This document shows, piece after piece, positions 23,705 to 60,877 of a DNA stretch of 64,000 nucleotides (position 1 is the first letter of the stretch; the number at the start of each line of letters is the position of its first letter). The DNA lies in assembly GCA_016748015.1 (NCBI GenBank), contig JAAOMT010000571.1:346582-410581 (forward strand). The letters run 5' to 3'. The notes beneath the pieces were generated by a model. The model worked only from the letters and a program-made list of their open reading frames with translations, was not told where the DNA came from and made no database searches. This DNA is from Geosiphon pyriformis uo1. Lineage: Eukaryota > Fungi > Glomeromycota. The position numbers and the translations under genes are program-made.

Positions 23705-24060
23705 ATGCCAAAATGTGTACATAATATTAACACAAAATTTGATCTCAAATATCTAAGAAAAACTGTTATTAGATTGAAATCTTATTTACATACCAGTATA
23801 GATTTAAAATTAATATTGAAAATTCTAGCAACAACAATAATGCAATTAGTGTTTAGATCTAGTTTAGCAAAAAAAAGAATTAATATTAAAGAAAAAATAA
23901 TTAATGCAAAATATATAAGAAATATTATTACAATACTACAAAACAAATCAGAAAAAACATATACTATTAAACTAAATGAAAATATAACACAGACAATATT
24001 CCTATTTTTAATAAAAATAGCTTATTTAGTATTAATAAAAACAAAAAAAAAGTTAAGAGA
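23705..24060 (+). pseudogene. dUTPase domain of gypsy copy B (decayed)
   Basis: ORF 23705-24094 shows NTKFDL (motif 1, DAGFDL), RSSLAKK (motif 2), KIINAKY (motif 3, GIIDAGY) and ITQ (motif 4). It is truncated before motif 5. Confidence 0.8.
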
Positions 24061-25450
24061 ATTAGAAGATTTGGAAAATTTTAATAAAGCTTAATATTAA
24101 AAGAAAAGAATAATATTATTTATAAAAATAGAAATTATAATAGATAGAAAATGGTTAATAAAAAAGAAACATAGTAAAAAAAGAAATTTCAAAATTAAAA
24201 AATTTCAAAAAATCTTATATAACACAAATTATGTATATATAGTAAGAGTATTAGAAGCAAAAAAAACATTCAAAATAAAAAACAGTAGTTAAAGACAAAT
24301 AATTATTCAATATTTCTTTTTTCAAAAAATAGTTTTCTATAACTTAAAGTAAAATTAAACTCCTATTAATAAAAACATTTATTATTACCTAAATCTATGT
24401 TCTTATCACTTAATTAAGAAATATTAATCAATTTTATACTATCAACAATCTATGTTAATAAAATTCAATACTTAATTATACTAAACTAATAGCTTTTAAT
24501 TACAGTAATTAACAAGATATTAATTTTTTTTTTTTTTTTTATTTTCTTTTATTTTTTTTTATTTTTTCTTTGGTTTTGTTTTTTTTATTATTATTAATTA
24601 ATTAAAAAGATTAAGTACTGAATAATTGATGTTAAAAATAGTTTGATAAAAGACTTATAAAACAAAAGTAAAAAAAATTTAAGAATAGTTTATCAGAAAA
24701 ACATAACTGCCAGAATAATTCAGCCACAACACCAAAAAAAAAATTTACAAAAAAAAAAACTATTAATTAAATCTCTATTTATTATATAAAAAACTCAACC
24801 AAAATCTTCAAACTTTAAAACTTTTAGAAATTATTATCATTAACAACTATTAAACATTAAATTATAAATTTGTTATTTGTTTTAATACTCTAAATAATTA
24901 TTTGTAATATTGGTAAATTTTTGATTATATTAAACAATTTATCAAAATTAATATTAATTATAATACTTAAAAATACAGTAATATTAATATAAGCCAAAAA
25001 TAAAAATTGTTAAATCCAATAAACTAAAATTACATTAAACACTATTTTTTTTATTTAAACTTCTATAATTGTATTTATATTAAACTTAATATTAAGCAAA
25101 TTTAAAATTAAATTATTATTTACTATAAAATAATTTAAAACTACTTTATAAAACAGATATTTTAAAATACTATAAACAATATAATTCTTATTAATAATAA
25201 AACTTTTTATTTTTTTTAATAATAAATAATCAAATATTTAAATTAAAAACTAATTAAAATTTTTAAAACTTAACTGCTTTGTATTTTTTCTGGCTTTAAT
25301 TATAACTAATAAAATAATATTAAAACTTAAACTTATATTTGTTAATTGCTAGATATCTATAATTATAGTTATATTAAAATATAATTAATATATTAATAAT
25401 TTATAAATTTTAAACTAAAAATTTAGTAAAGCTGTCTTAATAATTTTAGA

Positions 25451-26420
25451 TGTTATTATTAAAAATTTTAATTATTTTTTGTAATATTATTAATACTATT
25501 TTGCTGTTAATTTTATTGTTAATAAAAGTTAAAAATTTTTAATAAGTTAATTTATTTTTAAAGTATTTTTTTATACTTTAAATTATTATTATTATTAAAT
25601 TTATAATCAAATGACTAATTCTGTATTAATTATTTTATATAATTATTTTACAGTAAAAGTTAAATTTTTTTACAAAAATTTTTATCTATAAACTTTTTTA
25701 TATGTGATTACTTTGTTGTAAAAATCAATTTTTCTATAAAAAATCTTAATTATAAACTACTTAATTATAAAAAAAATCAAAAAAAATCAAAAATATAAAA
25801 AATATAAAAAAAATTATTTTCAGTTCAAACTTAAAATTAATTACATATTTATTAAAATTAAGAGTTAATTAAATTTAGAATATTAATTATAATTATAAAT
25901 TTTTGAATAATAATAATTAAAAAAAAGTTTGATTTTTTAAAATAAAATTTTTAAATTAATTTGTAATAGTTAATTATTTGTTAAAAAAATAATTTTAAAA
26001 TAAAATACATTTTATCAAAAAAAAAAGCTTTTTTATACAATTTATTATAATATTATTATATAGTTTACACTTTTTTTTGTTAATATTTTGGTAAATTAAA
26101 AATATATTTTATTAAATTACAAATTATTTTTATAAACTATTAAGTATTTTAATAAATTATTAAATATTTTGTTAAATTTTTAGATATTTTAATAAATTAT
26201 TAAATATTGTATTGTTTAAAATATTGTATAATTTAATTAATACAATTAATTATATTTATATACTATACAAATTAAGTTATTAATTAAATAATAATATTTA
26301 ATAATTTAATAAATAATAAGTAATAATTTAAAATAATAATATATATTAATTAATAATAAAAATTTATAATATAATAATTTTATGCTAATTAATAACTTAA
26401 ATTTTTATTAATAATAATAC
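25451..26420 (-). mobile_element. Solo LTR of family 2, extremely AT-shifted
   Basis: Collinear with 335-1290. For example, 583 agttattttgctgtgaaagtcaacttttttacaggaatctcatctgtaggct aligns with 25641 aattattttacagtaaaagttaaatttttttacaaaaatttttatctataaact. Confidence 0.75.
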
Positions 26421-29400
26421 CAAAAGTTTTAATTTAAATAATCTAAACAACTTTTTTGAGTTAATATTATTATAAATATAAAATCCTATTTTTTTAAACA
26501 TAATATTTGTTAAATTACACATAAAATTACATAATATAAGTTATATTAATTTAAAATTTTTAGTTTATGTAAATTTTTTTAAAAAATTAAACAAATTATC
26601 AGTTTTTAACAAAGTAATTTTTTTAAAACATAATTATTTTTTATTATCTGTATTTTTAATATTATATTTTATTTATTTTTATTAATTTGTTTTTATAGAA
26701 AAGTTAATTAAATAATTTATTTATAGTTAAAATATCATAAATAGCTATAATATTTATAAATAAAACAAAAAAAAATATAATTAATTGTTTTTTTTACTTT
26801 TTTTAAATTGTTTTATGTAATTATTTTTGTAAAAAAAATTTTAACAATAAATTAACCAATCTAAAATCCAAGCATTTTTTAAATTTAGTACTTTTTTTGA
26901 CTATTTTTATTGAAATTACCACTTAAAATAACAAATAAACTATTATTTACTACTTTAATTATAAAAAATTAATTAAATAAATTTAATTTAAGCATATTAT
27001 TAGTTTAATATTTATATATAAACTAAGAATTAAAAAATTGTTTTTAAACATTAATTTAATAAACAAAAAATATTTAACAATTTTAATAACTTTGTAAATA
27101 TGTTATATTAAATTAATTTTTATAATAATTTTTATTTTAAATTTTATATAAATAAATTTTAAACTAAAAGTAAAATACATGTTTTTTTTATATTTATTTT
27201 TAATTTATTAAATTTTTTAATTTTGTTTTAATAACTACAAAAATCAGATTGTTTTATTTTTTAAGCTATTTAACAATATTTATTTGTTTTATAAAATTAT
27301 TTATTTTTTTAATATTATATGTTACTATTTTTTAAATAAAACTATTTATTAAAAAAAAAAAAAAACAAATTAACATTAATATACAAATAATTTAATTTAA
27401 ATAAAACCAATTTTATAAAACTTTTAAATATTAATATATTGGTTTTTAAATTACCAATTATGATAATAAAAATTTTTAAACTATTAATATTTAAAAATAA
27501 AAAATTATTGAAGATATTATATATAAAAAAATAATGTATTTTGGTTATATATAACTATATTCAAATTATTAATTACTATAAAAATTTTAAAAACAATAAA
27601 AAACAATAAAAAAAAAAGAAACAAACAATAACAAATTTAAATTATGTAAAACTTTAAAAACTTAATCTAATAAAAGTTCTAATAAATATTTAAAAATACT
27701 TAAACAAATTAAACAGAAAAATAATAATTTTTTATTATTTATATTATAATTATAAATACTAAAAAAAATCAATAATTTATTAATATTAAATCTTTTTATC
27801 TTAAGAGAATTTATTTTAAAGTTAAGATAAATATAACTTTTATTATTTTGTTTTATAATTATTATTAGCCAAAAAAACATTATTTATCTTCTTATTAAAG
27901 TTTGTTTTTATGTTTAAAAAGTTGTTAACAATAATTAAAGATTTGTTTAAAAATATATTTTTTTATTTTTCTAAATATTTAATATTTTTAATTAATTTTT
28001 TTTGTTTTTAACTAATAAAACCATAAATAGACTCTTTTATCATTTTTTTTATTATACAACTACTAAAAGTAATTGTTAGATTTGTCATAAAGAGGTTTGT
28101 GTTATTAAAAATATTAAAAATATTAAAAAATAATAATAATAAAAAACAAAACTTTTTTATTAAAATAATATTCTTTTAAAAATTTAAAAAGTACAAAAAT
28201 TTTTTTTTTTATAATAATAGCAATTAAGTTTTATTAAGTAATAAAAAAATTAAAACATTAAAATTAATATTTTTAATTTGTATTTTTAATTCGTAAATTA
28301 AAATTTTATAATTAAGTATTTTAATATTTTACATAATTATATATATTTTAAAAAATATAATTACTTAAATATTTTTTTAATAATAATAATATAATTTATT
28401 TTTAATAATTTTTATTGTTTTTTATTTATTATTTTAAAAAATTTATATTTTATTCAATAATAAAATAATATATATATATATTAAATTAATTTATTAATTA
28501 TAATAAACTTTTTTTTTTGAAATTTTTATTTATGATTATAAATAATTTTAAAATTTTAAAATTTATTTTATTAAACTTTGTTATTATTATATATTTTTTA
28601 GTTGGTTTTAAATTGGATTTTTTGAAATTTAAGTTTGTTATATTGGTTTTATTAATTGGATTTGTTATTAAATTTATTAATACTTTAATTGTTTTGATTT
28701 TAAGTTGTTTAAAGCTTTTTTTATTTTATATATTAAATTAAAAAATAATTGTGTAATAATTAAAAAATTAGTTAAAACTTTTTAAAATAAGATAAGTAAA
28801 TTATATAAGAAATATAATATAATAAATACTAAAATTAGTATTAAATCTAATAAAAATATAAATTTTTTTAATATTATTATTAATAAAAAAGTTTTTACTT
28901 AAATAATAATATTTTAAAAAATCTAAGTTTTTGAAATTAAGTATAATATAAATAATACTGTCAAGTAAATAAATAGTATAATTAATAATAATTATATTTT
29001 AAATGTTTTTTTATATATAATATATTTTTTAAAATAGGGTTTTCTTTTTAGATTTAATATAATTTAATCTTAATTAAATTAAATAATTAGTTACATATAA
29101 AAAAATAGAAGTTATAATTATTTATAAAATTTAATAATTTTATATTATAATTATTATACTTTATTAAAAAAATAAAAAAAAATTCTTTATTTTTTAAAGT
29201 AATATTATAATTTTTATTAAAAATACTAAATTATTAAAATTTGTAAAATTTAATTATATAAATTATACTTTTTTGTATTTTTAATAATTAAAATTTTTTA
29301 TATTTAATATAAGTAAAACTTAAATATTTAATATTACATAATTTTTTTTATGCAGTTATAAATAATTTACAATATAATAATTTTAACATATAAATATATA

Positions 29401-29890
29401 AATTTATTTATTTTTGTGTTAATAATATCTGATTTTATATAATAGTATTTAAGAAGTTTTTATTTATATATTTAGATATATTTTTTATTAAACATAATTA
29501 ATAATATTATAAATATTTTAAACAAAATATTAAATATTGTTAAAAATATTTTATTATAATTTTTAAATGTTTTATCTAATAGTATGGCTATTTGCATTTT
29601 TTTTGTCAAAAATATATTTATTTAAAATTTTTTTGCAAAAATACTATTAAAATTCGAAATAATATTACAAAAAATATATTTTACAATAGTTATACTTAAA
29701 ATAAATACAATTTTTTTTTGTTTAAATTATAATTAATAAAAAAATTTGGTTTTTTAGCAGTATTACAAAACATTAAAAAAATCAATTTTAGTAATAATAG
29801 ATAAAAGCCTTGATTAAACTTCTGTTTTAATTGTTAACTTTAAAAGCATAAACTGATTAATTTTCAATATTAATTTATAGACAAAAATTT
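26421..29890. other. AT desert of unrecognisably mutated repeat relics
   Basis: G and C are very rare, CpG is essentially absent and there are no credible ORFs. Confidence 0.6.
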
Positions 29891-30161
29891 TTAACATAAT
29901 CGACACCTTAAAAATTCAAGCAGAAAAAATGTTGTGCACCGTTGCTTTGCAACCCCCAAGAAAGGTGGCGTCAAGGGAGCGAACGACGTTGCTCGAAGAA
30001 ATTTCCACTGACCATCAACAGCCGGCGCGTCCTTCAAAAAGCTCATCAGCAATTAACGCGTGTCCTGTCTCTTTTTACCATGAACTCGCTAAACTCAACG
30101 TTTTTAACGTGTCTATCAGTCCTATAATTCATTCTCAAGATTACAAGTCTCTCCACAAATA

Positions 30162-32339: not shown

Positions 32340-32347
32340 TATAAAAA
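32340..32347 (+). promoter_or_regulatory. Candidate TATA box of GN-repeat gene 1
   Basis: TATAAAAA lies ~150 bp upstream of the ATG at 32490. Confidence 0.4.
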
Positions 32348-32489
32348 GGGGAGGTTGGTCAACTCATTAATGTTTTTCTCACCCATCGAATTACCACTTT
32401 TCGTTTTATAAAATTAAAAAAGTTGCTTTCTGTTCTTCAAGCGACCTCCAGACGTAAAAATCAAAATTTTTTTTAATAACCAATAAAAA

Positions 32490-33892
32490 ATGGCAAAAAT
32501 TATCTACCTTTCCTCGGTTACTTGTGCCGCTCTTCTTACATTTGCCTTGGTCAATGCCGGTGATTTCAATGGCAACGCCAACGGAAATGGTAACGTTGGT
32601 AGCTTAAATGGCAATGATAACGGTAATAACAACAAAGGCAGCTTTAACGGAAATAACAACGGAAACCTCAATTTTGGCTCTGCTAATGGTAACGCTAACG
32701 GTAACAACAACAAGGGTGACTTTAACGGAAATAGCAACGGAAACTTGAACTGGGGATCATTCAATGGTAATGCTAATGGTAACAACAACAAGGGATCATA
32801 TAACGGCAATAATGATGGTAACTGGAACTGGGGTTCATTCAATGGTAACGCCAATGGTAACAAAAATGTAGGATCATACAATGGTAATAATGATGGTAAC
32901 TGGAACTGGGGTTGGTTCAATGGAAACACCAATGGAAACTACAATTTAGGATCAACTAACGGTAACAACGTTGGAAACAAAAATCATNNNNNNNNNNNNN
33001 NNNNNNNNNNNNNNNNNNNNNNNNNNNNNNNNNNNNNNNNNNNNNNNNNNNNNNNNNNNNNNNNNNNNNNNNNNNNNNNNNNNNNNNNNNNNNNNNNNNN
33101 NNNNNNNNNNNNNNNNNNNNNNNNNNNNNNNNNNNNNNNNNNNNNNNNNNNNNNNNNNNNNNNNNNNNNNNNNNNNNNNNNNNNNNNNNNNNNNNNNNNN
33201 NNNNNNNNNNNNNNNNNNNNNNNNNNNNNNNNNNNNNNNNNNNNNNNNNNNNNNNNNNNNNNNNNNNNNNNNNNNNNNNNNNNNNNNNNNNNNNNNNNNN
33301 NNNNNNNNNNNNNNNNNNNNNNNNNNNNNNNNNNNNNNNNNNNNNNNNNNNNNNNNNNGATGGTAACTGGAACTGGGGTTGGTTCAATGGAAACACCAAT
33401 GGAAACTACAATTTAGGATCAACTAACGGTAACAACGTTGGAAACAAAAATCATAAACGAGGTGACTTCAATGGCAACGCCAACGGAAATGGTAACGTTG
33501 GTAGCTTAAATGGCAATGATAACGGTAATAACAACAAAGGGAGCTTTAACGGAAATAACAACGGAAACCTCAATTTTGGCTCTGCTAATGGTAACGCTAA
33601 CGGTAACAACAACAAGGGTGACTTTAACGGAAATAGCAACGGAAACTTAAACTGGGGATCATTCAATGGTAATGCTAATGGTAACAACAACAAGGGATCA
33701 TATAACGGCAATAATGATGGTAACTGGAACTGGGGTTCATTCAATGGTAACGCCAATGGTAACAAAAATGTAGGATCATACAATGGTAATAATGATGGTA
33801 ACTGGAACTGGGGTTGGTTCAATGGAAACACCAATGGAAACTACAATTTAGGATCAACTAACGGTAACAACGTTGGAAACAAAAATCATTAA
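32490..33892 (+). CDS. Secreted Gly/Asn-repeat polyprotein (KEP-type precursor): signal peptide plus at least two 143-aa modules separated by KR; spans an assembly gap
   Basis: Signal-like sequence MAKIIYLSSVTCAALLTFALVNA. Module 1 (32559-32987) is 11 copies of the 13-aa repeat GxxNGNxNGNxNx. After the gap, ...KNH-KR (33455-33460) precedes an identical module at 33461-33889 and a TAA stop at 33890-33892. Confidence 0.9.
32988..33358. other. Assembly gap (N run) inside the tandem coding repeat
   Basis: 371 Ns. The ~95 nt after the gap are identical to the end of module 1. Confidence 0.99.
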
Positions 33893-35089
33893 GATCATTA
33901 TCAAAGACATTGCAAATGAGGCATTTTCAACACCATCTAATTTAGATAATGTTTACAAGTCCTGTACTTTGCTAGACTTCAAGTAACTTTGTTGTAGTTT
34001 TATTTAGTCATAATGTTAAAATTTTCACGTCTTTCTATGTAATTATAATTTTGGATGTGAATTTAGACCTAATTTTACTGATTATCCACGATCGAAATAC
34101 ATAACTAGTAAATTTCTTTCAAGAAATAAAATCAAAATTTTAAATACAGTAATTGGTTATGAATTTGTTTAAAGTGACTTAAACAGGTTTCGTTGGTGAA
34201 ACTGAAATAAGCAAAAGTATTAAAAAAAGCAAATGATCGAAATTTCTACGCATAAGATCTTTCAACACTCTTAATTCGTCAAAATATTTTGATATTGGCA
34301 AAATGGGAAATGATAAACTTGAAAACCTATTTAAGGTTTGGTCACTGCTATGGATACAGAGGTAGCTCAGAGCCAAATTTTATTATGCACACATTCGGGC
34401 TTGAAAGTAGTCACGAAATATGGGTACACAGTTTCATGAGGTGAAACTTGAATGGTACCACTTCAGATTTCCTATCTTGAACCCACACAAAGGTAAACTC
34501 TAATCGTAATTTTAATATGATGTTTTGTGAAAATCTTTTACTGAAATGCAACAGTGAAATCAAAAAGAGAGATAAACTTAAAACATATCTAGTTTATTAA
34601 TCAGTAATCACAAATTTGATATTTATCCATCTCACATACAATCAGCACAATTACCATCTAGTATTAGAAAGGCTTTCGTGTAGCAATTTGGTTCAATTAT
34701 AGGACTATCTCAACAGGAAATACAATGGGCGTAAGTATGATAATTTGGTCAAAACTTCTTTCAAGTATTCAGGATGACGCCTTTGCTGAAATAGAATTTT
34801 ATAAAGTCTTTTAATTGGAAAATTATTTTAAACCTTTAAAACCAATTTGAGTATCACTCATTTCCAACAATAATTGATAAGAATTTTTTGTTTTTGACTA
34901 TTCGATTTTAATAATATTGATTATTTCGAAAAATATTTTTCATCCCATATCGCATTATCACATTTTTATAACTTATAATTATGCTAATGATTTTAATAAA
35001 AATGTACTTTGACTAAAGTTGCCATAATTTTTTCCCTGAGATTCAAACCTATTACATTTACAAACATATGAATAACCAGAGGTGGGAGA

Positions 35090-35660
35090 TTACCTCGTTC
35101 TTGCTTTAACTGATAATGTAAATTAAATAATGATGATATTTTAATAAAACAAAATAAAGGTTATAAAAAAATTTCTGTTTGAAAGTTTTTTACCTTAGAA
35201 TTTAAATTAAAGATTTTAAATTAATCTAGTCAAAAAGACTTAATATTAAAATATATTTTAAATTGTGTAATATGAAAGCTATATAATAACAAAGTTATAT
35301 AGTTTAATATATACAATTTATTAATGTTAATTTTTAACGATAACAATCAATTACAAATCTAATTATAATAATCGTTTACAATATGGAATTTTTAGTAAGA
35401 CAATAATTCAAAACACATCTTAAAATGATCTCAAAGCCTGTTTTCCAAAAATGCAGTTTTTTTGGACATGATATAGTCTTAATCTTAATCTAATTGTAAA
35501 TATTTTAACCAAAATTACATTAAAAAAATAAGATGACAAAAACAAAGTGTCAAACAAAAGAGTTTTGTTATGTTGTTAAAAAAGAGTGAAAGAATCTTTT
35601 AAAGAATGAAGTTTTTAACTACATTAATAGTATACAAAATCGTCTTAACTAGACATATGT
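35090..35660 (+). mobile_element. Heavily mutated Tc1/mariner transposase relic
   Basis: TAG TAA GAC AAT AAT TCA AAA CAC (**DNNSKH, from QQDNDPKH) at ~35393 and SLNLNLIVNI (from SPDLNPIEN) at ~35476. Confidence 0.55.
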
Positions 35661-37065
35661 TTTTTAACTTAAAAACAATACAAAAAATAATTTTTATTAT
35701 TATTATTGTTATTGAATAATTAAATAAATTTGATTATTATTGTTTTACAAAGAAAAAATTAAAATATATATTATAAAAAACAAAATTTTATTGTTTTATA
35801 TTCACAAATTGCTTTTTGTTTGTTATTACTTTTTTTTTTTTTTACAAAGATATTACAAAGAAATAAAACAGCTTCAGAAAATATTTAAAAGTACAAATGT
35901 CATTTTTATGTTTATAACAATCAAGAAACTTAAAATTAAAAATTTTTGAAAATATATCAGTTTTTTTCTAACGGCTTGAGAATTAAAAACTGTAATAAAA
36001 TTTATTTAGTAAATTTTATAAAAAACTACCATTTTTAATTAAAACTTTATTATCATTACAAAATAAATGGATTTGAATATTTTCTTAAAATAATTTGTTT
36101 TATTAATATATATTATTTTTTTATGAATTTTATTTTTCACAATATGTTGTAAATTAAAAAACTATTTTATTAAACATAAAAAAAATAATTTTTTATTGCA
36201 TTGTAGACTAAAAATTGTATTTGAATAGTTTGAAATAAATATAATGCTTAATTATTATATAGTGGTAATTTAGAATTATACAAACCCAATTAGTTACGAT
36301 TTATGTGATAGTTTATCATATTCACCATTTCATTTTTACTATGCATAAATACTAATAAATTTTACAAATTAAATGTTTATATGATTAAAAAATTTGCAAA
36401 TTTATAATATTTAAAATTTGTCTATAATATATTAAAACAATAAAAAACTTAAATGCTTATATTTTTTAAAAAAATTATTTTGGATTTTAATTGGCATATT
36501 TTTAATAATAATTTAGCTCACAGTATATTATAAAAGATATATTTTAATATTTTGTATTTCAAATACTACAAAAATTCAGACAATATTGAAATAATTACAT
36601 CTTTTAATAAACATTATCAATGTTTTCATCTTGAGAAAAATATTTCTTATTTGTTGGTCTATTTTCAGTTTATTTACATACAAAGCAAAAAGTAACAAAA
36701 GGTTTTAATACAATTAATGTCTTGTTTTGCATGAAAAAATTAAATTCGAAGTAAAATACTGGAAATTAAAATCATTAAATTTTATCTGTTATGAATGGGG
36801 TAAATGTTTGAAAATGTTTTTGAGACAAATTATTAGATGGCAAAGGTTATCAAATTTGAGCTTAGTGAATATTTCCTCAGTTGTATTCCGAAGTGTGTCT
36901 TGACAAATTTTCAAATCCTCAAATTTGGAAATAGATTTCCAAAGCAAAAATTCAGTTTCTGTATTTATTGCTCGAGGGAATTTAGGATCAAATAAAAGAT
37001 TGTACATGTCGAAATAATTATAACACTTAAGATCATTGTGATTATACATATTGAACTATAAAAAA

Positions 37066-37602
37066 TTAGACATATTTTAATACCGATCCATTAACATGAG
37101 TTTTTTCTCTCACAGGATAGCGTTTTTTAAGCTCATATCTCTTAGATACATCTCTCTTCAAGTCGTCGTTGCTATTCCTATTACCGTTAGACCAACCGCT
37201 ATTGAAGTTACCATTGTTGTTCCCATTCAAGCTACCGTGATTATTGTTGCCATCATTATTTTCATTATTGCTGCCAAATTTATCATTTCCATTACCACCT
37301 CCGCGTTTGCTGAGCCGAGTTTGCCTCAAAATTGGCTCTCTCTTATATAAGTATCTCTTCCAGTCGTCGTTGCCGTTCCTATTACCGTGAGACCAACCGA
37401 TATTGAAGTTACCATTGTTGTTCCCATTCAAGCTACCGTGATTATTGTTGCCATTATTATTTCCATTATTGATGCCAAGATTATCATTTCCATTATTATT
37501 TCCATTACTACTTCCGCGTTTTTCATTCGCTGAGACCGTTCCAGTAAAGGTGAGGAGAGCAACATAAAATAAGGCAGATATTACAAAAGTTTTCTTTGCC
37601 AT
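37066..37602 (-). CDS. Secreted Gly/Asn-repeat KEP-type precursor, gene 2 (178 aa): two GN modules and short KR-flanked spacers
   Basis: Signal-like MAKKTFVISALFYVALLTFTGTVSA, then NEKR | four 13-aa repeats | KR YLY KR EPILRQTRLS KR | a second degenerate module | KR DVS KR YELK KR. TATATAAA lies ~75 bp upstream. Confidence 0.9.
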   Translation of the reverse strand: MAKKTFVISALFYVALLTFTGTVSANEKRGSSNGNNNGNDNLGINNGNNNGNNNHGSLNGNNNGNFNIGWSHGNRNGNDDWKRYLYKREPILRQTRLSKRGGGNGNDKFGSNNENNDGNNNHGSLNGNNNGNFNSGWSNGNRNSNDDLKRDVSKRYELKKRYPVREKTHVNGSVLKYV

Positions 37603-40600
37603 TTAAAGTTCTCCTAGGAAGGATCTTTCTTTTGAAATTATTAAGATGAAGTTTTTGTTGAGAAGGCAATGGTTTTTTTATATACCTTTCAAATGTTAGG
37701 TTACTCTAGAAATTCAATTTTTTCAGGCATAACATTAATGGTTAATTGGAGTATTAACTATTCACCCTCTTTTTAGAGTAGCAAAAATATTTCTCATATT
37801 TACAATTAATTTCACTTGTAACGCATTATCGTTATTTGAAACTTTTTTTAGTATATTCTATATTATTCTGATATAACTAAAAAGATTTCCAGTCTAGCAC
37901 ATTCTTACGCTAAGGGCTATCATTGAAATTTTAGAACAAAGCCTTTGAGGCTTTAAACCTTAATTTTTCGTAGTAAGAATGAAGCCACTATCTGTGACTT
38001 TGAATCTAGACCATTTTAATTACTCTAGTAAAATAACGTTTGCCAATTTGATTTTTTAAGAGAATAGATTTGATCGGATGACTTCCCAATATCTTATTAA
38101 TTTGAAATAGCAAGCAACATATTAAACCAAAGAATGACTTTGATATTTCAGGTTTTGAGGCTAGTGGTAGTGATTTCACGACTTTCTTAATTGGGGTTTT
38201 ATTGTTTTGGCTCTTTTGCCTTTTTTGCCTTTTTTTAAGGCGGAATATTTCTTTTCCAGTTGCTTATTCTTCAATAACATTATATGACATGTAAAAACAT
38301 CTTAAACTAATAAATAATCAAGGATTACCTAATTTTAGAGGCTGGTGGCAATATATTCTTATTAGGATTTCATTGATTAGCTTTTTTTACCTTTTAATTC
38401 ACCTATAAATTTGTGAATTCAAGATGTTTAGATATTTTGCAAAATATTATTTATTATTATTATTATTTTTCAAATTATATTATACGTAAAATCTATTGTC
38501 TTTATCGATTTTAACAAAGCAAACCGTGAATGTTGGTGCTGTGCCGTTTTGTTTAACTGTTAATTGGTTCTCTATCTCCAAGCTTTCTTGCAATTAAAAC
38601 ACTCTTTCAATAATAAAATAGGGAGGATATTAGATAAGATTTTAACAAACTTAAAGATAAAGCAAGGAGGCAACAAATCTAGGTGTAAAACTTACAAGCT
38701 GTTCCTAAAATTAGAGAATCTCGTATTAAATTTTTGTTAAATAGTTCATAATTTCAATTCTCGATTCATAATTTTGCTCAATTATTAACCCTTAAGACAT
38801 GTAAGTAGTTTTAATCCAAAATCATTATTTCACTTTCCACAACACCTATTTGCTTCTTCGATGTTTGTGACGTCACATTGACGGATATAAAATGGATAAC
38901 AAAAAGATTTATCAGTCTTATGTTTTAACTTTAGGCGGAATTTTAAAACAACGACTGCAAAACTTATACTTTTCAATAATTAAAAGGTTTAAAGAGAAAT
39001 TAGGATATTAATTAATAAATGAAAAAATTAATATTTGTAATATTTAATTTTTTTACCTAAAATTTAAAACAATAATTTATTATATAATTTTTGGTCAATG
39101 GATGAGATATTTGTTAGAAGGTTAGATTATATTTTAAATATGAAAAAATAATCCCGTCTCTTCAGAAAATTCAAATTATTTAGCAACAAAAATTATGTTT
39201 TCAAATTAATTTAATCAGTTCTATCAAGTTTTTTATTATCAATCCCACCTTTATTTCTTTTTTCTCTTCTTAGTTGTTAAAAAAAATCAATATATCAAGT
39301 TTTCTTCGTTTTTCACAAATAAACTTGATTTTATAATTCACCAACATTATAACATCTAATTGTACATAGACTTGATCCTGCTTATCAGGAAGAGAGAACT
39401 AGGCTAGAAAATTTGTTAGTTAGGTAGAATCTTAAATGGGGAGGTTAAATTGGGTAATTTATCGAATACAAGATAGTATTTCTTCGGGTTTATTGAAAAT
39501 GGTTTTTGTCAAATTCTTTCAAGAATCAAAAGTAATTATGTTGGGAAATATTTTAATTTTTAAATTCTCGAGATTCTAATTATTTGATTATGTATGTGCA
39601 GAGTAAAGTTTTATCTCATGGATCCAATTTTTTTCGAGACATATATAAATTAGTTATTTATCTTTCCCTATGATCATAGATTTGGTTTCTAAAAAATCAA
39701 CTATTTAGTAAAACTTGTATTTATTAAATTAAAAGTAAATAAAAGGTTTAAATAACAGAAAATCCCAATACTATTTGTTATGCATATAAGTATATTGTTT
39801 CTAAAAATATATAACTTTTCATTTTAACATAATGGTGTATTGCATCGATTGGTGCAATCCCAATATCCCATTGTGATCGTCATTCTTCACCATTTTTTTA
39901 TAATATAAAATAGATTTTAGTTCCACAAAAAAAATGAACCTCAAAAGATCCCCAAAAATACTAATATCAATAAAAATTTTTCCTTGTGAGATGTTAATAT
40001 AGCAAAGTGAATATTGAATCCGCTGTAGAAACCCTTGTAAGTTCAAAGAGAATGATATAAATACGCCCACCAATGGTAAAAGACAGGATTTAACTTTCGT
40101 AAATCCTTAATACCAGTTATTGCTGACCTTTATTGCTTTCTGTACCTACATCTAGTCCTGAGTTTCAGGACATGACAACTATGTCAGCCGGAATAAAATT
40201 CTAGTTCGTAAGATATGGATTTAAACCTCGGACTGAAAAGTTTTTTATCTCCTACAAAAAGTTCTTAAATTTGTACAAACAAAAACTAAATAACTATTGT
40301 AGAAAAGACTTTTTCAAAACAATTGAAATCAAAAAATATAAGTTTAAAGATGAATGGAAATCATGAAGTTTTGCAATTTAAACCTATCTTATATCATTAT
40401 GTAGAAGATTAAATTAATCGCAAGCTCTTATTGTCATCATATTAGGCTGTTATTTAAATATAGATAATGGAAAATAAATTAATACTCCCAATAAAAATAC
40501 TAAATAAGCAATACAGCACCAACATATTACCTGCAGAAGCCTATATATTAGAAATTGGGATTCTTGCCTTAATATAATTTGAAAAATAATAATAATAATA

Positions 40601-41790
40601 AATAATATTTTGCAAAATATCTAAACATCTTGAATTCACAAATTTATAGGTGAATTAAAAAGGTAAAAAAAGCTAATCAATAAAATCCTAATAAGAATAT
40701 ATTGCCACCAGCCTCTAAAATTAGGTAATCCTTGATTATTTATTAGTTTAATATGTTTTTACATGTCATATAATGTTATTGAAGAATAAGCAACTGGAAA
40801 AGAAATATTCCGCCTTAAAAAAAGACAAAAAAGGCAAAAGAGCCAAAACAATAAAACCCCAATTAAGAAAGTCGTGAAATCACTACCACTAGCCTCAAAA
40901 CCTGAAATATCAAAGTCATTCTTTGGTTTAATATGTTGCTTGCTATTTCAAATTAATAAGATATTGGAAAGTCATCCGATCAAATCTATTCTCTTAAAAA
41001 ATCAAATTGGCAAACGTTATTTTACTAGAGTAATTAAAATGGTCTAGATTCAAAGTCACAGATAGTGGCTTCATTCTTACTACGAAAAATTAAGGTTTAA
41101 AGCCTCAAAGGCTTTGTTCTAAAATTTCAATGATAGCCCTTAGCGTAAGAATGTGCTAGACTGGAAATCTTTTTAGTTATATCAGAATAATATAGAATAT
41201 ACTAAAAAAGTTTCAAATAACGATAATGCGTTACGAGTGAAATTAATTGTAAATATGAGAAATATTTTTGCTACTCTAAAAAGAGGGTGAATAGTTAATA
41301 CTCCAATTAAACATTAGTGTTATGCCTTAAAAAATTGAATTTCTAGAGTAACCTAACATTTGAAAGGTATATAAAAAAAACCATTGCCTTCTCATAAAAA
41401 ACTTTTTCTTAATAATTTCAAAAGAAAGATCCTTCCTGGGAACTAAATATAAAATTCTAAAGAGTACTTTAAGTGGCAAAGAAAACTTTTGTAATATCTG
41501 CCTTATTTTATGTTGCTCTCCTCACCTTTACTGGAACGGTCTCAGCGAATGAAAAACGCGGAAGTAGTAATGGAAATAATAATGGAAATGATAATCTTGG
41601 CAGCAATAATGGAAATAATAACGGCAACAATAATCACGGTAGCTTGAATGGAAACAACAATGGCAACTTCAATATCGGTTGGTCTCACGGTAATAGGAAC
41701 GGCAACGACGACTGGAAGAGAGACTTATATAAGAGAGAGCCAGTTATTAAGTGAATTGGGCTCAACAAACGCGGAAGTGGTAACTTGAAG
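37290..41790. repeat. Inverted duplication: near-identical arms ~37290-38482 and 40570-~41790 around a 2.1 kb spacer
   Basis: The promoter (~870 bp) and 5' coding regions are reverse complements with few substitutions. More diverged homology continues outward (36840-36910 vs 42075-42137). Confidence 0.92.
39370..39870. repeat. Dispersed diverged duplication, copy 1 (copy 2 at ~62350-62905)
   Basis: ttatcaggaagagagaactaggctagaaaatttgttagttag aligns with ttatcaggaagagagagaattaggataaaaactttgtgagttag, and both copies share gattggtgcaatcc. Confidence 0.7.
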
Positions 41791-41838
41791 AGAGATCCTA
41801 TGTTCATTTTACCCGATATCCCAATTGATATGTCTTAA
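41473..41838 (+). pseudogene. GN-repeat gene 3, inverted paralog of gene 2: GTG start and premature TGA; probable pseudogene or truncated single-module variant
   Basis: The start context is tttaaGTGgca, against tttaaATGgca in gene 2. TGA occurs at 41752-54 where gene 2 has CAA. The frame continues IGLNKRGSGNLKRDPMFILPDIPIDMS* to 41838. Confidence 0.8.
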
Positions 41839-44800
41839 AAAGTTTATTTTAGATCAAGTTTTTAAATTCTCTTAGCTGTACATACTCCCTTGTTCATGTA
41901 ATTAACTTGTATAATTTCTTATAAAGAGATTTATTTTACATGAATCTCAATAAAAAAATGTCAATCTTTTGGTAAATTCGAATTTGATATCCTAGTTTGA
42001 CTTGCATACTTAAATGATTCCATTTATAATAGTCATTTCAATATATAAACCGCGAATTTAATCTTCATAAATAGGCAAAATATACTTCAGACTACAGCTG
42101 AGAAAATGTTCAGGAAGCTCAAATTCGATAACCTTTGATTTGTAATATTATCCGCTAAAATTTAAGTTTTTTTCTATTATGATAAATACAACTCGAATTT
42201 ATAAATTACGATCAATGGTTAATTTTTTCATGTAAAGCAAAATATTAGGTTTATTAAAAAATCTTTGTACTCCTGGTTTTTTAAAAAAAATATAATTCCT
42301 ACATATTTTGCTTTCCATGACATTTTTTTGATAAATGCTCTAGATTTGGATATGACTAGCCAAATTTGAGCTTTTCAAAATCAATAGTTTTTTAAAGAAA
42401 ACCATAATTACAAATGTCAAACTTTTATCTCTGAAAAAAATTTTAGTATGTGTATTTTTCTAATAACTTCTAAAATTATTATTATTTAAAAAATTTCTGG
42501 TAAAAATTCTTTCTTATTTTTATATCTATTTGGGATTTATTTTATAATGTAAAATATTCAAATTTGTGTAGTTGAAATAGAAATTAAAAAACTAAGTTTA
42601 TTTTTTCAACTAAATTTTAATTTCTTGTCATCCAACTACTATTTACAGATTACAACATATGTATTTTCAAATATAGACATGAATTATTCTCTTTCTAATT
42701 AGCCATCTAGGCCAATTAAAACTACTTTGTGTTAAAGCATTATGCAAAGTATTTATTTTTTAGTTTTTTGTTATGTTTCAAAGTAGAATCTAATATGCTT
42801 ATTAGAACACTTATTATATTATCTAAACAATTAACAGATTTAAGCAAATACTATAGAACATTTTTAACAATTTTAAAATATTAATTATTTAATACATCAA
42901 AATTTTTGATTCAGTATTTAGTATTAATTTGTAGTTAATTCAATTTTTTAGTGCAAAACTGAAAAATCAAAGCTTTATGCTTTAAAGAATAAAATAAGTT
43001 TAAAAACAGTAGTAACAATAATAAAGTTGTTAAAATATATACAAAAATTATCTAATATATAACTTTTTAAATAATTTTTTTTTAAATATATATAATACTT
43101 ATAATTTATAATAATGAAAACATAAAAAACAAAACCAATTATTAAACACAGCATATTTTATTTAGTTTTAATGGTTTTTACAACAATAAAACAATAAAAT
43201 TACTAATTTATTTAATTTTATTACATTTTATTATTGTTAAGCTTGATTTAACGTTAATTTTAACTAATTTTAACTAGACAAAATAATTTATTTCGATTTT
43301 AAAATAATATTTAAATGCTTTTATGCTTTTATTTATTGAAAGCTTTTCTATTAATTGAAACTAAATTTGTTAATAAACTTAAAAGTTAACATTATATTTA
43401 AAAAATAAAAGTTAAATATTAAAATAATGGCATTTTCAATAGTATATACTTACAAATTTGTTATCATCAAAATTAATTTAGTGTTTTGACAATTAAATTA
43501 AATATATTGTCTGATATCACAGTATTAATATTACCCAAAATTCTTTTGTAAGCTTTTAACATTAATTTTATTCTATCTACAAAGCAAATTACGATAATAA
43601 GTACTAATTTTAAAGGATTACTTGAACAAAAATTCTTATGTTCACTCTAATTTGGTTAATACTTGAGTAGCTTTTTACTTCTGTAGTTAATTGCTTTGAA
43701 GAGCAGAAAAAGATAACATAACAATTAAAATATGTCAGACAATATTTTTATTGACATATTCAGCAGCAGAGCACAGCCATTATTAGATAACACAAAGTAA
43801 TCTAACTAACTACTGATAAATGTGACTTAACTAAATGCCACTATGCCTAAGGAAATACTTTGCCAGCCGAACTTCAGAATCCATTTTGCTTGTGTGGCAT
43901 CAGAATTTTTTTTTCAGCACGTTGCTCAAGATTTTTCTTTAATACTGTTGAGAACACAACTAATGTTGTGGTTAACACAATAATTTGCTGCAATAGCATT
44001 ATATGTCCAATTTTTTCCAGGTGTGTCAAAAAAACATTGATATGTTTGAAGGTGAAAATTATGCGAATAACAAAAGATCTGTAATGGAAGAAATTCACAA
44101 TTTAAAAAGTAAAATGAGTGTTTATATTATATAGCAATAAGCGCATATATGGGGCGTGCTGCAACAAAACAAAAAATATTATTGGTTCAATAATAAGTCA
44201 TGGTTTCATATTATAAATTATATTTGTTTAAAAACAAGTCTTAATTTTATTCAAGTTTCCAAACTAAAATAAAATTATCTAGTTTGCTTATTATTTTTCT
44301 TTTCAACTTTGTTTTTTTTTTTAAATTTTGAGACAAATAGAAGCACAAGCAGATTTTAGAGTAAATGAATTGCTACCCTCTTCAGTTATTATTTTATGGA
44401 ATTCTTTTACAGAATGGTGGTTTTAATCAACTGTTATAAATTGTTATTTTACTAAAAAAAACAAGCCAAACAAAGAGTAAAAAAATACAGCTACTTTCTT
44501 GACTGACACAATACTTGAAGTCTCTGAAAATGTCTAAACTTTTCTGAATTTTTTTATTTCTTTGACATAAGTTCCATTGAAATTCTCATCGCCAATATTT
44601 TTTCTCTACAAAAATACAGAAATCTAAGTGATTTAAATGATTTTGGAATACTGGAAAAACAAACTTCATTAAAAAATTTTTGACTTGCACAATTTATATT
44701 TAGTAATAAAATTCTAAAAACAAAATTTAGCATGTTAAAATACCATATGCTAAAAATTATCATATTTGAGTTTCATTAATATTTTTTCAACTGTATTCTG

Positions 44801-45079
44801 AAGTGGATTTTATTAATAACTATTTGAGTTCTCGACTTTGGATTTTCGAAGCAAGAGACTCCGTTTCTGTGTTTACTAGCTTTATCTATTTAAGAAGATT
44901 AAATTCCGGCTTATATATCGAATCACTATTATAAATGAAATCATTTAATTATGCAAATTAAACTAAGTTATTAAATCTGTCGCTTCTTCGAATTTACTAA
45001 AAAGATTTATATTTTTTTATTGAGATTTAAGTAAAATAAATTTCTTAATAAAAATTAATATAAGTTAATTATATGATAA

Positions 45080-45400
45080 GGGAGTATGTACAGCTAAGAG
45101 AATTTAAAAACTTGATTTAAAATAAATTTTTTAAGACCTATCAAATCGGGATAGGTTTATAGGGTGATTATTCCCTAAATAAAATAAAAACTACCGTTAT
45201 AATTTCCATTGTTGCTTCCAAGATTACCATTTCCATTATTATTTACATTTTAAATGTTAGGTTACCCTAGAAATTCAATTTTTTTCAGGCATAACACTAA
45301 TATTTAAATGAAGTATTAACTATTCATCTTCTTTTTAGAGTAGCAAAGAAATTTCTCATATTTTTAGAGAAAACCCTTTTGTAGTAATAGAATGAAGCCA
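45080..45400 (-). pseudogene. Deleted remnant of a fourth GN-repeat gene
   Basis: 45080-45152 matches the gene 3 stop and 3' UTR (41815-41889). 45191-45243 encodes NNNGNGNLGSNNGNYNGS. 45250-45365 matches the promoter at 37690-37800. The TATA box and signal peptide are missing. Confidence 0.8.
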
Positions 45401-52155: not shown

Positions 52156-53553
52156 ATGTCAACCGTTAACAAATCCTCCTCTGGTGGTAATAAGAGGCAT
52201 TATGCCTCAAAAAGGGTAATAATACATTAAATGTGTATTTTTTTCTAGTAAAACTGGTCTTTTAAACATCATAATTACCAAAATAAATTCTTTATCAAGC
52301 TTTACTTTTTTGTTTAATTAGACGACGACGACGACTAAACGTGGTAACGGTCCCTCCCAAGACTTTCAGTTTGTTACTGGGAATTCTAAACGACGAAGAA
52401 GCCGTAATTATTTCTTTCTTTCTTTTTTTGAGTTTTTAAATCGTTTCTTTTTTATTATTCTAAAATCTGTTCCGTTTACTTTTATCCTAATCAGAGTCCG
52501 AAAATTATGACGATACCACAAAACCTTCGGGTCGAGAGGAAAAGTCATTATTTTCCTTGACCATAAAATTCTTGGGCCTTCTGCGTGAAGTACAGGGTCG
52601 TGAATTGGACCTTAAATTAGCGGCAAAGACGTTAGGGGTTGAGAAACGTCGTGTTTATGATATAACGAATGTTTTGGAAGGGATTGATCTTCTAAAAAAA
52701 ACCAAGAATCATGTCAGTTGGGTGTAAGTCGAAAAGTATTTTAAACATGTAATATGTTCATATTATTGAAGTTTCTTGGTTCAAATGCTAATTTACCTTT
52801 TTTTTATTTTTTTTTTTATTATTTTTTTTTTTTTCAGAGGACCAAAGGAATTGTTTAATTGCTCACCCCCGGTGTCTCCACTGGATGATGATGAAAATAA
52901 TATAAACGAAAGAAATGCCAGAATCCGAGCCGAGAACGAAAGTCTCCGGCAAGAGCGCGAATATGTGGAAAAGCTTTCGGCGCAAAAAGAAGAAGAGATG
53001 AGTACCTTCAATAAAGCTCTTTTGTTTGTCACTGAAGATGAGATCAGTGAAATGTTTCCCAATCAAGTACTTTTTGCTGTCTCGGGTCAATCCGACCAAG
53101 GATTGGAAATTGAAAAAGTATGTTTATCTCCTTTTTGCTTAATGCTGTCACTTTTAGATTTTTATAAAATTATTTAACCTTGAAATTTTTAACACCATTG
53201 TAATGTAGAATGGTCGGAACTTTAACATTTATCCCAAACCAAAAGAAATTATACAACTAGGAAATTACACCAAAAATTCAAAATTTCCTTCGGTTATTCC
53301 CAACGGTGGTTTCCAAAATCATCATCCCAGCCCCCCGATAAATACCCACGACACTTATCCTTTACCAAATCGTTCTATATTACTTCTACCACCAATATCA
53401 CCTCGGCGTAACATGCCAACTTCAACTCCACCCGAGGAAGGGTACGATAACGGAAATCGACAAAAGAATCGTTTCGCTTACGATGTCCATCGGGACTGTC
53501 AACAATGTTCCGATTATTTTTCATATGATGTAGGACACAATTCTTTTCATTAA
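52156..53553 (+). CDS. E2F: E2F-family transcription factor, about 5 exons (52156-52164 uncertain, 52322-52403, 52495-52723, 52838-53117, 53209-53553)
   Basis: Winged-helix DNA-binding domain [17 protein letters not shown]...[39 protein letters not shown] coiled coil and marked box follow ([20 protein letters not shown]). GT-AG introns preserve the frame. The first exon is uncertain. Confidence 0.92.
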
Positions 53554-58319: not shown

Positions 58320-60877
58320 TGTCATAAGTTAGAACAGGATTTGAGTTAATTTAGAATTCTAATTCAACTTGAATTAATTCGGAATCATTAATTCAACACT
58401 GTGTTGATTCCGAATCAACTCAACCAATTACATTATTTGGTTAATTGGACAGTAAAAAATTTCTCTTTCATTAGTCAATCAAAAAAATCAAAGTTTTGAT
58501 ATTTAACACGTTTTTTTATGGCTTCCCAACATCATTTATTATTTATAAATTATGAATGGCTTACTCAAGAAACATTTTCTGACCTTTTTGAAAGCTATTT
58601 ATTAGCTAGAAGTGAAAAAAGACAAGCCAAAACTTTGCTTTCTCAAGATTACATAAACCAATACATTAAGATATTAAAAAGTACTCCTGAAGGAGAAAAC
58701 TTTTATTCTAACTTGAAATTTTGGGTATGCACTAACTTTTATATTGCACAAGTCGGAAGACAAGATATACTTTATCTTAAAAAAACAAAAAAACCAGTCT
58801 GTTTGAAAGAAAAATTATATGAAAAACTATGTGAATTTTATTTAGAAATAGAACATAGAGGAATGAGTAAAACTTATAACGCGGTATATAATATTAATTT
58901 AATTTTTTATATAAATAGATACTAATAATTTTTTATTTATAGATTAAAAATAAATACGCTTAGGTGCCTGAGGATTTAATAAAACAGTTTTGTTCTCGCT
59001 GTGCTAGATGCATTACGCGATGATCCTTAGCTTAACCAATAGCTGCAAATCCGATATTAGCAAAAGGCTTCATGTGTTGTTTACAAATAGACTTGGTTGA
59101 AATGCACAATCGACCAGATGATTCTTACAAATATATCTGTCATGCTCGGAATCATTTTACGAAATTTTCTTGGACTACGGCCCTTTTTTCTAAAAAAGCA
59201 AAAGAAGTAGCAAGCTTCCTTTTTCAACTTTTTACCACATTTGGACCTCCAACTATCCTTCAAACTGATAATGGAAAAGAGTTTATGGCTAATATAATCA
59301 GAAAATTAACAGAAATGTGGCCAACTATTCTTATTATAAATGGATGCCCAAGACATTCTCAATTCCAAAGATTAATCAAATGAGCAAATGATGTACTTCA
59401 ACAAAAACTTTCAAAATGGATAGAGGATAAAGAAACTAATAATTGGTCGCATGGTTTATATTGGGTGACATGTAAAAAAAATTATTTTTATTTTGATTGA
59501 ATTATTTAAACAATGACTAATTTATTTTTATGTTTAGATGTAATGAACACAGAAGTCTCTGTGGTTACTGGCTTTCCACCTTATTAAATAGTGTCTGGAA
59601 GAAAATCTTGTGTGAATTATTTTCTTTTCGAGTCCCTTTTTGAACAATCAATTATGCAAGAAAAAGATCTTTCTAATAACTTGGATGTAGAGCCAGCTGA
59701 TGAAGAGCCAATCCAACAGGAAATCAAAAGTAATAGTGATCTGCAGTAAAACAGATCGCAGCAATAAGATGACCAGCAATGGCAGCAAAATGACCAGTAA
59801 CAAGATAACCAGCAGTAGCAGCAAGATGTCCAGTAGTCACAGCAGAATAACCGGGAGCAGTGGCAATAATCACTAAACTAGCAGCATCAATCTAATATAG
59901 TAAATAATATTGAAAAAGAATTAAGAAGAATTGAGCCACGAGTGGAAGAACCAAGCAATCTCTTGAAAAATACTAGTACTCACTCTAATAACTCTCATGT
60001 TTTTTCCATTATAATTTCAAGAGATGAGATAATGTTTTTTATTATTTGCACTTTTTAATATTATTCTGTATTAATCTCATATTTTTTAATAAGATAATGA
60101 TGACCAGAACAATGTGCTACATGATATTACTAACTTACCCACTGGCCATCATAAAATATGCCAAATTGTTCGTGACTGATATGTTAATAATGCCAAAGTA
60201 ATGCTGCATAAAAATACAAAGCAGAAAATATCTTATGAGATTGGAGATTTTGTGCAAATTGGGATTCCAAAGATCAATTGTTCAGGTACTGATAGAAAGC
60301 TCCTTATCTGCAAAGTGATCAGAACTGTTAATGAAAGATTATATAGACTGGAATGCAAGTCAGGAATATTAAAAAATTCTTATCATGCAATAGAATTAAT
60401 GCCTACTAAGGCTACTGATTTTCCAGAATTACGAGAAATACTAAACATTTTTATTTCTTTATGTGAAGCAGCCTTATGCCAAAGTCGGGGGGAAATGACA
60501 GATTATCAATGCAATTGTAAAGGAAGCTATAGAACTAATCATTGTAATTGCAGAAAAGCCAGGGTTTTATGTGGTGCACGATGTCATGGTGATAATAGCA
60601 ATGCTTGTGAGAATCGAAACAAATAATTAAAATTATTAGATATGATAATAAAAAAATGTGTCAAATATCAAAACTTTGATTTTTTTGATTGGCTAATGAA
60701 AGGGAAACTTTTAACTGGCCAATTAACCAAATAATGTAATTGATTGAGTTGATTGAGTTAATTTGGAATCAATACAGTGTTGAATTAAGGATTCCGAATT
60801 AATTCAAGTTAAATTAGAATCCCAAATCAACTTAAGTTGATTCCGAATTATCTCAAACCCTGTTCCAACTCATAACA
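58320..60877 (+). mobile_element. Ginger-like (integrase-type DDE) DNA transposon with long TIRs and an intron-containing, decayed transposase
   Basis: TGT...ACA termini, ~190-220 bp TIRs and a perfect 4-bp TSD TATC (58316-19, 60878-81). HHCC remnant, QIDLVEM, TILQTDNGKEF, a Q-rich linker and a C-terminal CNCKG...CNCRK...CGARCH. First intron at 58884-58942. Confidence 0.9.

Follow-up and report, generated by a model that had tools for sequence, protein, structure and literature searches.

We analysed a window of 64,000 nucleotides from the genome of the fungus Geosiphon pyriformis uo1 (contig JAAOMT010000571.1, positions 346,582 to 410,581; all positions below count from the first letter of the window). 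Geosiphon, a member of the Glomeromycota, houses the cyanobacterium Nostoc. Between positions 32490 and 45400 the window contains a group of loci related by a repeat of 13 residues, rich in glycine and asparagine. The first is gene 1 (32490–33892, forward strand), a single-exon gene encoding a secreted precursor, probably the published protein GpRIC2. The precursor most likely consists of a signal peptide followed by three modules of 143 residues joined by Lys-Arg (KR) sites, with an inferred length of 456 residues.

The predicted signal peptide of gene 1 (32490–32558, 23 residues, cut after V-N-A) has a basic start, a hydrophobic core with a mean hydropathy of 2.3 over 11 residues, and small residues at −3 and −1. 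It is followed by module 1 (32559–32987), which contains 11 units of 13 residues. An assembly gap then occupies 32988–33358. On its far side, 33359–33460 encodes the last 32 residues of the preceding module and a KR site (33455–33460), and the last module runs from 33461 to 33889. Its protein sequence is the same as that of module 1, from which it differs by three synonymous bases, and the stop codon at 33890 comes directly after the last complete module. A TATA-like box, identified from the sequence, lies upstream at 32340–32347 on the same strand, and the contigs of sequencing run X3 start at 32395. Runs X2 and X3 contain genes only and no intergenic DNA, and behave like RNA, though they are not recorded as RNA. 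They cover gene 1 and its untranslated regions (UTRs) at great depth, from 32395 into the 3′ UTR; contig depth cannot rank genes against each other. An earlier reading of the DNA, made without database searches and here called the sequence-only reading, had proposed a fungal precursor with a signal peptide and KR sites. Its fungal origin and general architecture are supported, and the signal peptides that it gave to the intact copies fit the hydrophobic N-termini, as judged by hydropathy and the −3/−1 rule.

The repeat unit is G-x-x-N-G-N-x-N-G-N-x-N-x, and the gene 1 module contains it 11 times (11 × 13 = 143 residues). The module is 41% Asn and 24% Gly (65% together), with 11% aromatic residues (Trp, Tyr and Phe) and 1.4% Thr. 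It has five Lys and five Asp. It contains no Cys or Pro, as the sequence-only reading stated, and therefore lacks the eight-cysteine pattern of hydrophobins. The period greatly exceeds chance: the self-identity of gene 1 at a lag of 13 residues is 0.62, compared to a mean of 0.24 and a maximum of 0.35 in 10,000 shuffled sequences. At a lag of 26 it rises to 0.79, showing that the units alternate pairwise. At the fixed Gly and Asn positions, 211 of the 385 codon pairs differ synonymously. The constraint on the repeat therefore acts on the protein, and this variety of codons rules out an origin of the repeat as satellite DNA. Despite its 41% Asn, the module at 32559–32987 contains no N-glycosylation sequon; shuffled sequences contain 4.5 on average, and none in 0.1% of cases. 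This may be a simple consequence of the repeat register. Several paralogues elsewhere in the genome have many sequons, unlike the gene 1 module.

The number of modules in gene 1 depends on what the gap hides. As assembled, the flanks of the gap are out of frame (offset modulo 3 of 2), and the 96 nucleotides directly before it are identical to the 96 directly after it, implying that 371 nucleotides is not its true length. In the DNA run X1 the contig depth is 227 for the module, 150 for the KR junction, and 83 and 90 for the single-copy flanks. The collapsed contig upstream of genes 2 and 3, which is known to represent two copies, has a depth of 140. Relative to single copy, these figures give ratios of 2.6 for the module and 1.7 for the junction, against 1.6 for the two-copy stretch, which indicates three modules, two junctions and a true gap of about 340 nucleotides. 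The gap thus most likely hides a KR site and the first 111 residues of the middle module. The collapsed contigs of runs X1 and X5 carry a combination of bases absent from both assembled modules, as expected of a middle copy. A two-module gene, in which the flanks would simply overlap by 96 nucleotides as they do in the X5 contig, was rejected, because a collapsed repeat would produce an identical contig and the depths point to three modules. The count is inferred from depth, since no single read or contig extends across all of gene 1, and X1 is possibly the very sample used for the assembly.

Three modules give a protein of 23 + 3 × 143 + 4 = 456 residues, while other module counts would give 311 or 601. 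The open reading frame of GpRIC2, from Sanger-sequenced cDNA, is also 456 residues long (Table S9, PMC8786786). Our value was derived from depth independently of the published one, and the two agree. No other retrieved paralogue has this length, although a few of them contain gaps. In addition, five short motifs were compared with Pabra_AGL2 of Paraglomus, for which RIC2 is reported as the best match (PMC8786786), and gene 1 alone among the paralogues shares all five. On its length and motifs, gene 1 is very probably GpRIC2. This would place RIC2 in the genome, at a spot where the gap hides the gene from annotation.

Gene 2 (37066–37602, reverse strand) is an intact precursor of 178 residues, annotated in NCBI and represented by gene-specific contigs in run X2. 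It has a signal peptide, a first module of 52 residues (37360–37515), a degenerate second module of 48 residues (37159–37302), and short KR-bounded spacers that contain Tyr; its fourth unit strays from the strict pattern. An inverted duplication has the 5′ half of gene 2 and the DNA upstream of it in its left arm (37292–38482), to which its right arm (40570–41783) is 94–99% alike. The right arm contains gene 3 (41473–41754, forward strand), with one module of 52 residues at 41560–41715. Here a GTG, confirmed in run X1, replaces the ATG, an in-frame TAA lies just before it, the frame contains no Met, and it is closed by a TGA at 41752, at a point where that of gene 2 stays open. Gene 3 is thus a probable pseudogene. 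Locus 4 (44886–45363, reverse strand) is a deleted remnant of the same unit, retaining upstream sequence (45236–45363), a 56-nucleotide scrap of the repeat (45194–45249) and the downstream flank (44886–45153). Together with genes 2 and 3 it forms a single series of local duplications. The sequence-only reading described four related loci with modules of 4 × 13 residues in genes 2 and 3. The shared repeat is real, and the length of 52 residues holds for gene 3 and for the first module of gene 2, though not for its second. The idea of a four-gene system can be rejected, as there are two intact genes and two relics.

Nor is the clustering special, because local duplication explains it and the family is spread over the genome. 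Searches of the genome (128.3 Mb, 792 contigs) found at least about 100 matches at no fewer than about 40 loci, among which gene 2 is most likely a minor paralogue. Some paralogues are polyproteins whose KR sites separate modules of 2–11 units, in others up to 25 units follow one another uncut, and others again are fused to Ser/Thr-rich (mucin-like) or Pro-rich tracts. No insertion or deletion breaks the period of 13, even in arrays that reach 25 units. A profile search with the repeat alignment confirmed no related loci, probably owing to the low complexity of the sequence. A gene for a Kex2-type convertase with a P-domain is present in the genome. A search for hydrophobins in the genome gave no match, but its controls were silent too. 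It is worth adding that the NCBI model G9A89_006378 joins a protein resembling F-box/leucine-rich repeat (LRR) proteins to a precursor of this family across an assembly gap, and is probably a mis-annotation.

The sequence-only reading did not recognise the repeat as a described family. In fact these genes belong to the GpRIC family, whose three named members (GpRIC1–3, from the thesis of Hoffrichter, 2018) are the Geosiphon counterparts of the Gly/Asn (GN)-rich secreted proteins of Ambispora and Paraglomus (Schultz, 2022; PMC8786786). The family therefore has a name, while its function is uncharacterised. The sequence-only reading had named assignment to a characterised family as grounds for its own refutation, and is to that extent refuted in part. 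The published proteins come from the same species and have a signal for the endoplasmic reticulum (ER), GN-rich repeats and KR sites. The same account had already proposed the KR sites as possible Kex2 sites and linked the GN-richness to amyloid. Its description covers three genes labelled as intrinsically disordered proteins (IDPs) and names no period of 13 residues, whereas the genome holds about 40 loci. Proteins of Ambispora leptoticha (Amlep_AGL4/5) and Paraglomus brasilianum (Pabra_AGL1/2/4) share the 13-residue unit, the signal peptide and the KR sites after whole modules (PMC8786786), and an Ambispora protein with the unit was also recovered directly by protein search.

The combination of a signal peptide with identical KR-separated modules resembles the fungal Kex2-processed repeat proteins (KEPs; PMC6339444, PMC7329392), notably Rep1 of Ustilago maydis; dipeptides recognised by STE13 are absent from the Geosiphon precursors, as they are from Rep1. 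No sequence relation to Rep1, α-factor or Ece1 was found. The published pipelines set limits on size and number that the three 143-residue modules of gene 1 lie outside. Umemura (2020) asks for at least three repeats of 8–100 residues between Kex2 sites, while the repeats of gene 1 are 143 residues long and gene 2 has two long modules. Le Marquer (2019) asks for at least four fragments after cuts at KR or RR, of which gene 1 gives three and gene 2 eight. By these limits gene 1 is formally no KEP, though it would be KEP-like in its working. In gene 2 (37066–37602) and in several paralogues (L067:1802–3271, L044 and L039), short Tyr/Trp/acidic spacer peptides of 3–5 residues are repeated many times between KR sites. 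This layout and the spacer peptides, together with the family name and its discovery in a Geosiphon expression library (PMC8786786), could suggest that the family supplies symbiosis-specific effectors or signal peptides aimed at Nostoc. We consider this very improbable. Ambispora and Paraglomus, which host no Nostoc, have the same repeat and KR layout, and neutral 143-residue modules that account for several per cent of the mRNA do not look like signals. A search of the genome for UstYa/DUF3328 oxidases, the mark of dikaritin-type RiPP precursors, also gave no match, its control being equally silent.

Searches of the repeat against Pfam, NCBIfam and PDB sequences gave no match, curlin and Fap profiles matched in neither Pfam nor NCBIfam, a feature search of the ESM Atlas returned unnamed bacterial clusters only, and a literature search for the motif strings found nothing. 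AlphaFold2 was run on two alignments, one of 22 aligned windows of the repeat and one of 73 in-register windows that included bacterial, plant, algal and ascomycete sequences. For eight units, the 73-window alignment gave a predicted local distance difference test score (pLDDT) of 98.3 and a predicted template modelling score (pTM) of 0.88; two of the five models converged, both with pLDDT above 96. DSSP assigns the confident model one bridge per 13 residues and no strand of three residues or more, while a canonical parallel β-solenoid has at least two strands per turn. The repeat is therefore predicted by this model to form a regular coil with one turn per unit, and not a canonical sheet-sided β-solenoid. 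The ordered, solenoid-like fold proposed in the sequence-only reading is thus supported, with one turn per 13 residues, though in the confident model without β-sheet sides.

Comparison of the confident model with 48,161 PDB representatives gave, as best matches, an RTX roll (Z 4.8), the polyproline-II antifreeze bundle of a springtail (Z 4.4) and CsgA (Z 4.2, root-mean-square deviation (rmsd) 8.1), all of them at background level, and Foldseek found no significant match in the PDB and viral libraries. A missing structural match is no proof of a new fold. The regular coil and the springtail protein bring to mind an ice-binding or ice-nucleating protein, and fungal solenoid ice nucleators exist (PMC12978214). 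Such a role appears very unlikely here, as the module has 1.4% Thr and no Thr-x-Thr motif, Pfam shows no ice-nucleation match, and a Z of 4.4 is background.

The unit is not confined to these fungi. At least three strict in-register units are present in 55 of 164 retrieved proteins, a few of the 55 being from Geosiphon or Ambispora, while the published account restricts the GN-rich class to Glomeromycotina (Schultz, 2022; PMC8786786). The carriers include secreted proteins of Mesorhizobium and bacterial surface proteins with a VPLPA-CTERM signal. In Root_cap (PF06830) proteins of Prunus, and in related proteins of Humulus and Salvia and similar-looking ones of Coccomyxa, the strict 13-mer comes directly after the signal peptide. 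In Microdochium bolleyi eight strict units precede a Cys-rich domain that UniRef names hydrophobin. Small secreted Cys-rich metagenomic proteins, which by appearance may be methanosarcinal, also contain three units. The unit is sporadic in the bacterial class, being found in 2 of 401 sampled genomes at an E-value of 1e-10, and for so simple a sequence common descent and convergence cannot be told apart.

In Mesorhizobium B1-1-8 (CP083956; L072:5001–6834) the gene with the unit is the first of three unannotated, co-oriented genes for secreted Gly/Asn-repeat proteins: A has 8–9 copies of the strict 13-mer, B has irregular spacing and C has a 9-mer. When the second gene was used for a scan, 28 loci were recovered, and almost every one has the same run of three genes. 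Of 30 bacterial loci examined, 27 have a LuxR-type regulator adjoining the cassette, a HisKA_3 kinase is often nearby, and in three loci an autotransporter lies upstream. This layout resembles that of csgD and csgBAC in the curli system. Curli subunits (CsgA and CsgB) and Fap are also secreted and rich in Gly and Asn, with one turn per repeat and a proposed uncapped stacking. The curli repeat is longer, at about 22 residues, and the fold match of the Geosiphon model to CsgA is at background.

On the basis of these observations, we hypothesise that the Kex2-released modules of gene 1 stack into an extracellular fibre, or a coat on the wall or surface. We put the probability of this reading at roughly 0.55. 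The precursor would enter the ER, where the signal peptide is removed, and Kex2, with Kex1, would then cut after each KR in the Golgi, releasing three identical, net-neutral modules of 143 residues from each mRNA. Each module would be a narrow coil that completes a turn every 13 residues, with Gly 1, 5 and 9 making its turns and the invariant Asn residues stacked in ladders. Since the modules consist of a whole number of units and lack a capping domain, each could dock onto the end of the next and so build up amyloid-like fibres, on which the aromatic residues of positions 3, 11 and 13 would present a sticky face. In bulk, this material would serve as a structural fibre or coat, working like the Ustilago Rep1 repellents or curli. 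RIC1, RIC2 and RIC3 account for 22.3, 5.0 and 3.0% of the reads of a Geosiphon cDNA library (PMC8786786), a level typical of structural proteins. The fusion of the unit elsewhere to anchors of the wall or surface (hydrophobin, VPLPA-CTERM and Root_cap proteins, and mucin-like Ser/Thr tracts) is also counted in favour of a coat, as are the Kex2-type gene, the unbroken period of 13, the confident AlphaFold2 models and the curli-like layout of the bacterial cassette.

The same fusions, in which the unit is often a stalk-like domain, would also fit folded coils that act as monomers or oligomers, binding surfaces such as chitin, glucan, the Nostoc sheath or minerals as adhesins or spacers, and forming no fibres. 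The fixed positions of the aromatic residues would suit this role. However, an anchor is missing from the modules of gene 1, and the mass output of identical, uncapped units is better explained by polymerisation, so that we regard adhesins of this kind as unlikely.

Several observations weigh against the fibre or coat. The other three models of the 73-window run have pLDDT values of 54, 39 and 32, and the 22-window run gave a different solenoid, with two short strands per turn, at a pLDDT of 53. The deep alignment was built from overlapping repeat windows, which can inflate the confidence of AlphaFold2. Structural matches to YadA heads, CsgA and ryegrass ice-binding protein (Z of 10–13, rmsd above 7) came from the pLDDT-53 model and were discarded because that model is poor. 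KR sites are missing from many paralogues, and cleavage must therefore be dispensable for the family. No export pore of the curli or Fap type is seen within 3.5 kb of the bacterial genes. The identity of gene 1 with GpRIC2 (MH580278), for its part, is drawn from length and motifs and is to that extent probable.

The low-confidence models, the content of Asn and Gly, and the lack of sequence matches agree with the classification as IDPs, and hence with the view, derived from Schultz et al. (2022), that the proteins are secreted as a disordered, hydrated gel or glue, for which amyloid is a mere tendency. We think this improbable, to about the same degree as the adhesins. A strict 13-residue register, free of insertions and deletions in dozens of genes and in several kingdoms, is easier to reconcile with a folded repeat than with disorder, and the two confident AlphaFold2 models predict a coil that stands against the published label.

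A broader proposal can be made more tentatively. The unit may be an undescribed fold, a narrow coil with Asn ladders that differs from the solved solenoids and builds extracellular fibres across kingdoms. It would do so as Kex2-released modules, a major part of the secretome, in Geosiphon, and as a curli-like system of three subunits, regulated by LuxR, in Mesorhizobium and other Alphaproteobacteria. This we consider possible, though doubtful as a whole.

What is new here is the confidently predicted, unmatched fold, the probable RIC2 locus and the bacterial cassette; the family itself is known. Together RIC1–3 are reported to make up about 30% of the Geosiphon cDNA-library reads (PMC8786786). 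With a genomic place and a predicted fold, the question of their role is reduced to one expressible, Cys-free protein of 143 residues, and the Mesorhizobium cassette makes the unit accessible to genetic work in a tractable model. If fibres do form, the early-branching Glomeromycotina would possess a protein coat made in bulk and unrelated to hydrophobins, which would matter for the properties of the wall and for the interface between fungus and cyanobacterium.

Further features lie elsewhere in the window. A decayed retroelement of higher GC content occupies 1418–7012, with an RNase H domain at 5669–6172. An open reading frame at 23705–24094, in very AT-rich DNA, matches dUTPase (PF00692, E 2.5e-7) and is possibly the remnant of an element, and the GC content of the stretch at 25000–30000 is 8–13%. 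An exon at 52776–53177 has a weak match, under the cut-off, to the E2F CC-MB domain (PF16421) and is likely part of a gene for an E2F transcription factor. A fragmented transposon with an integrase core (rve) lies at 58518–60626.

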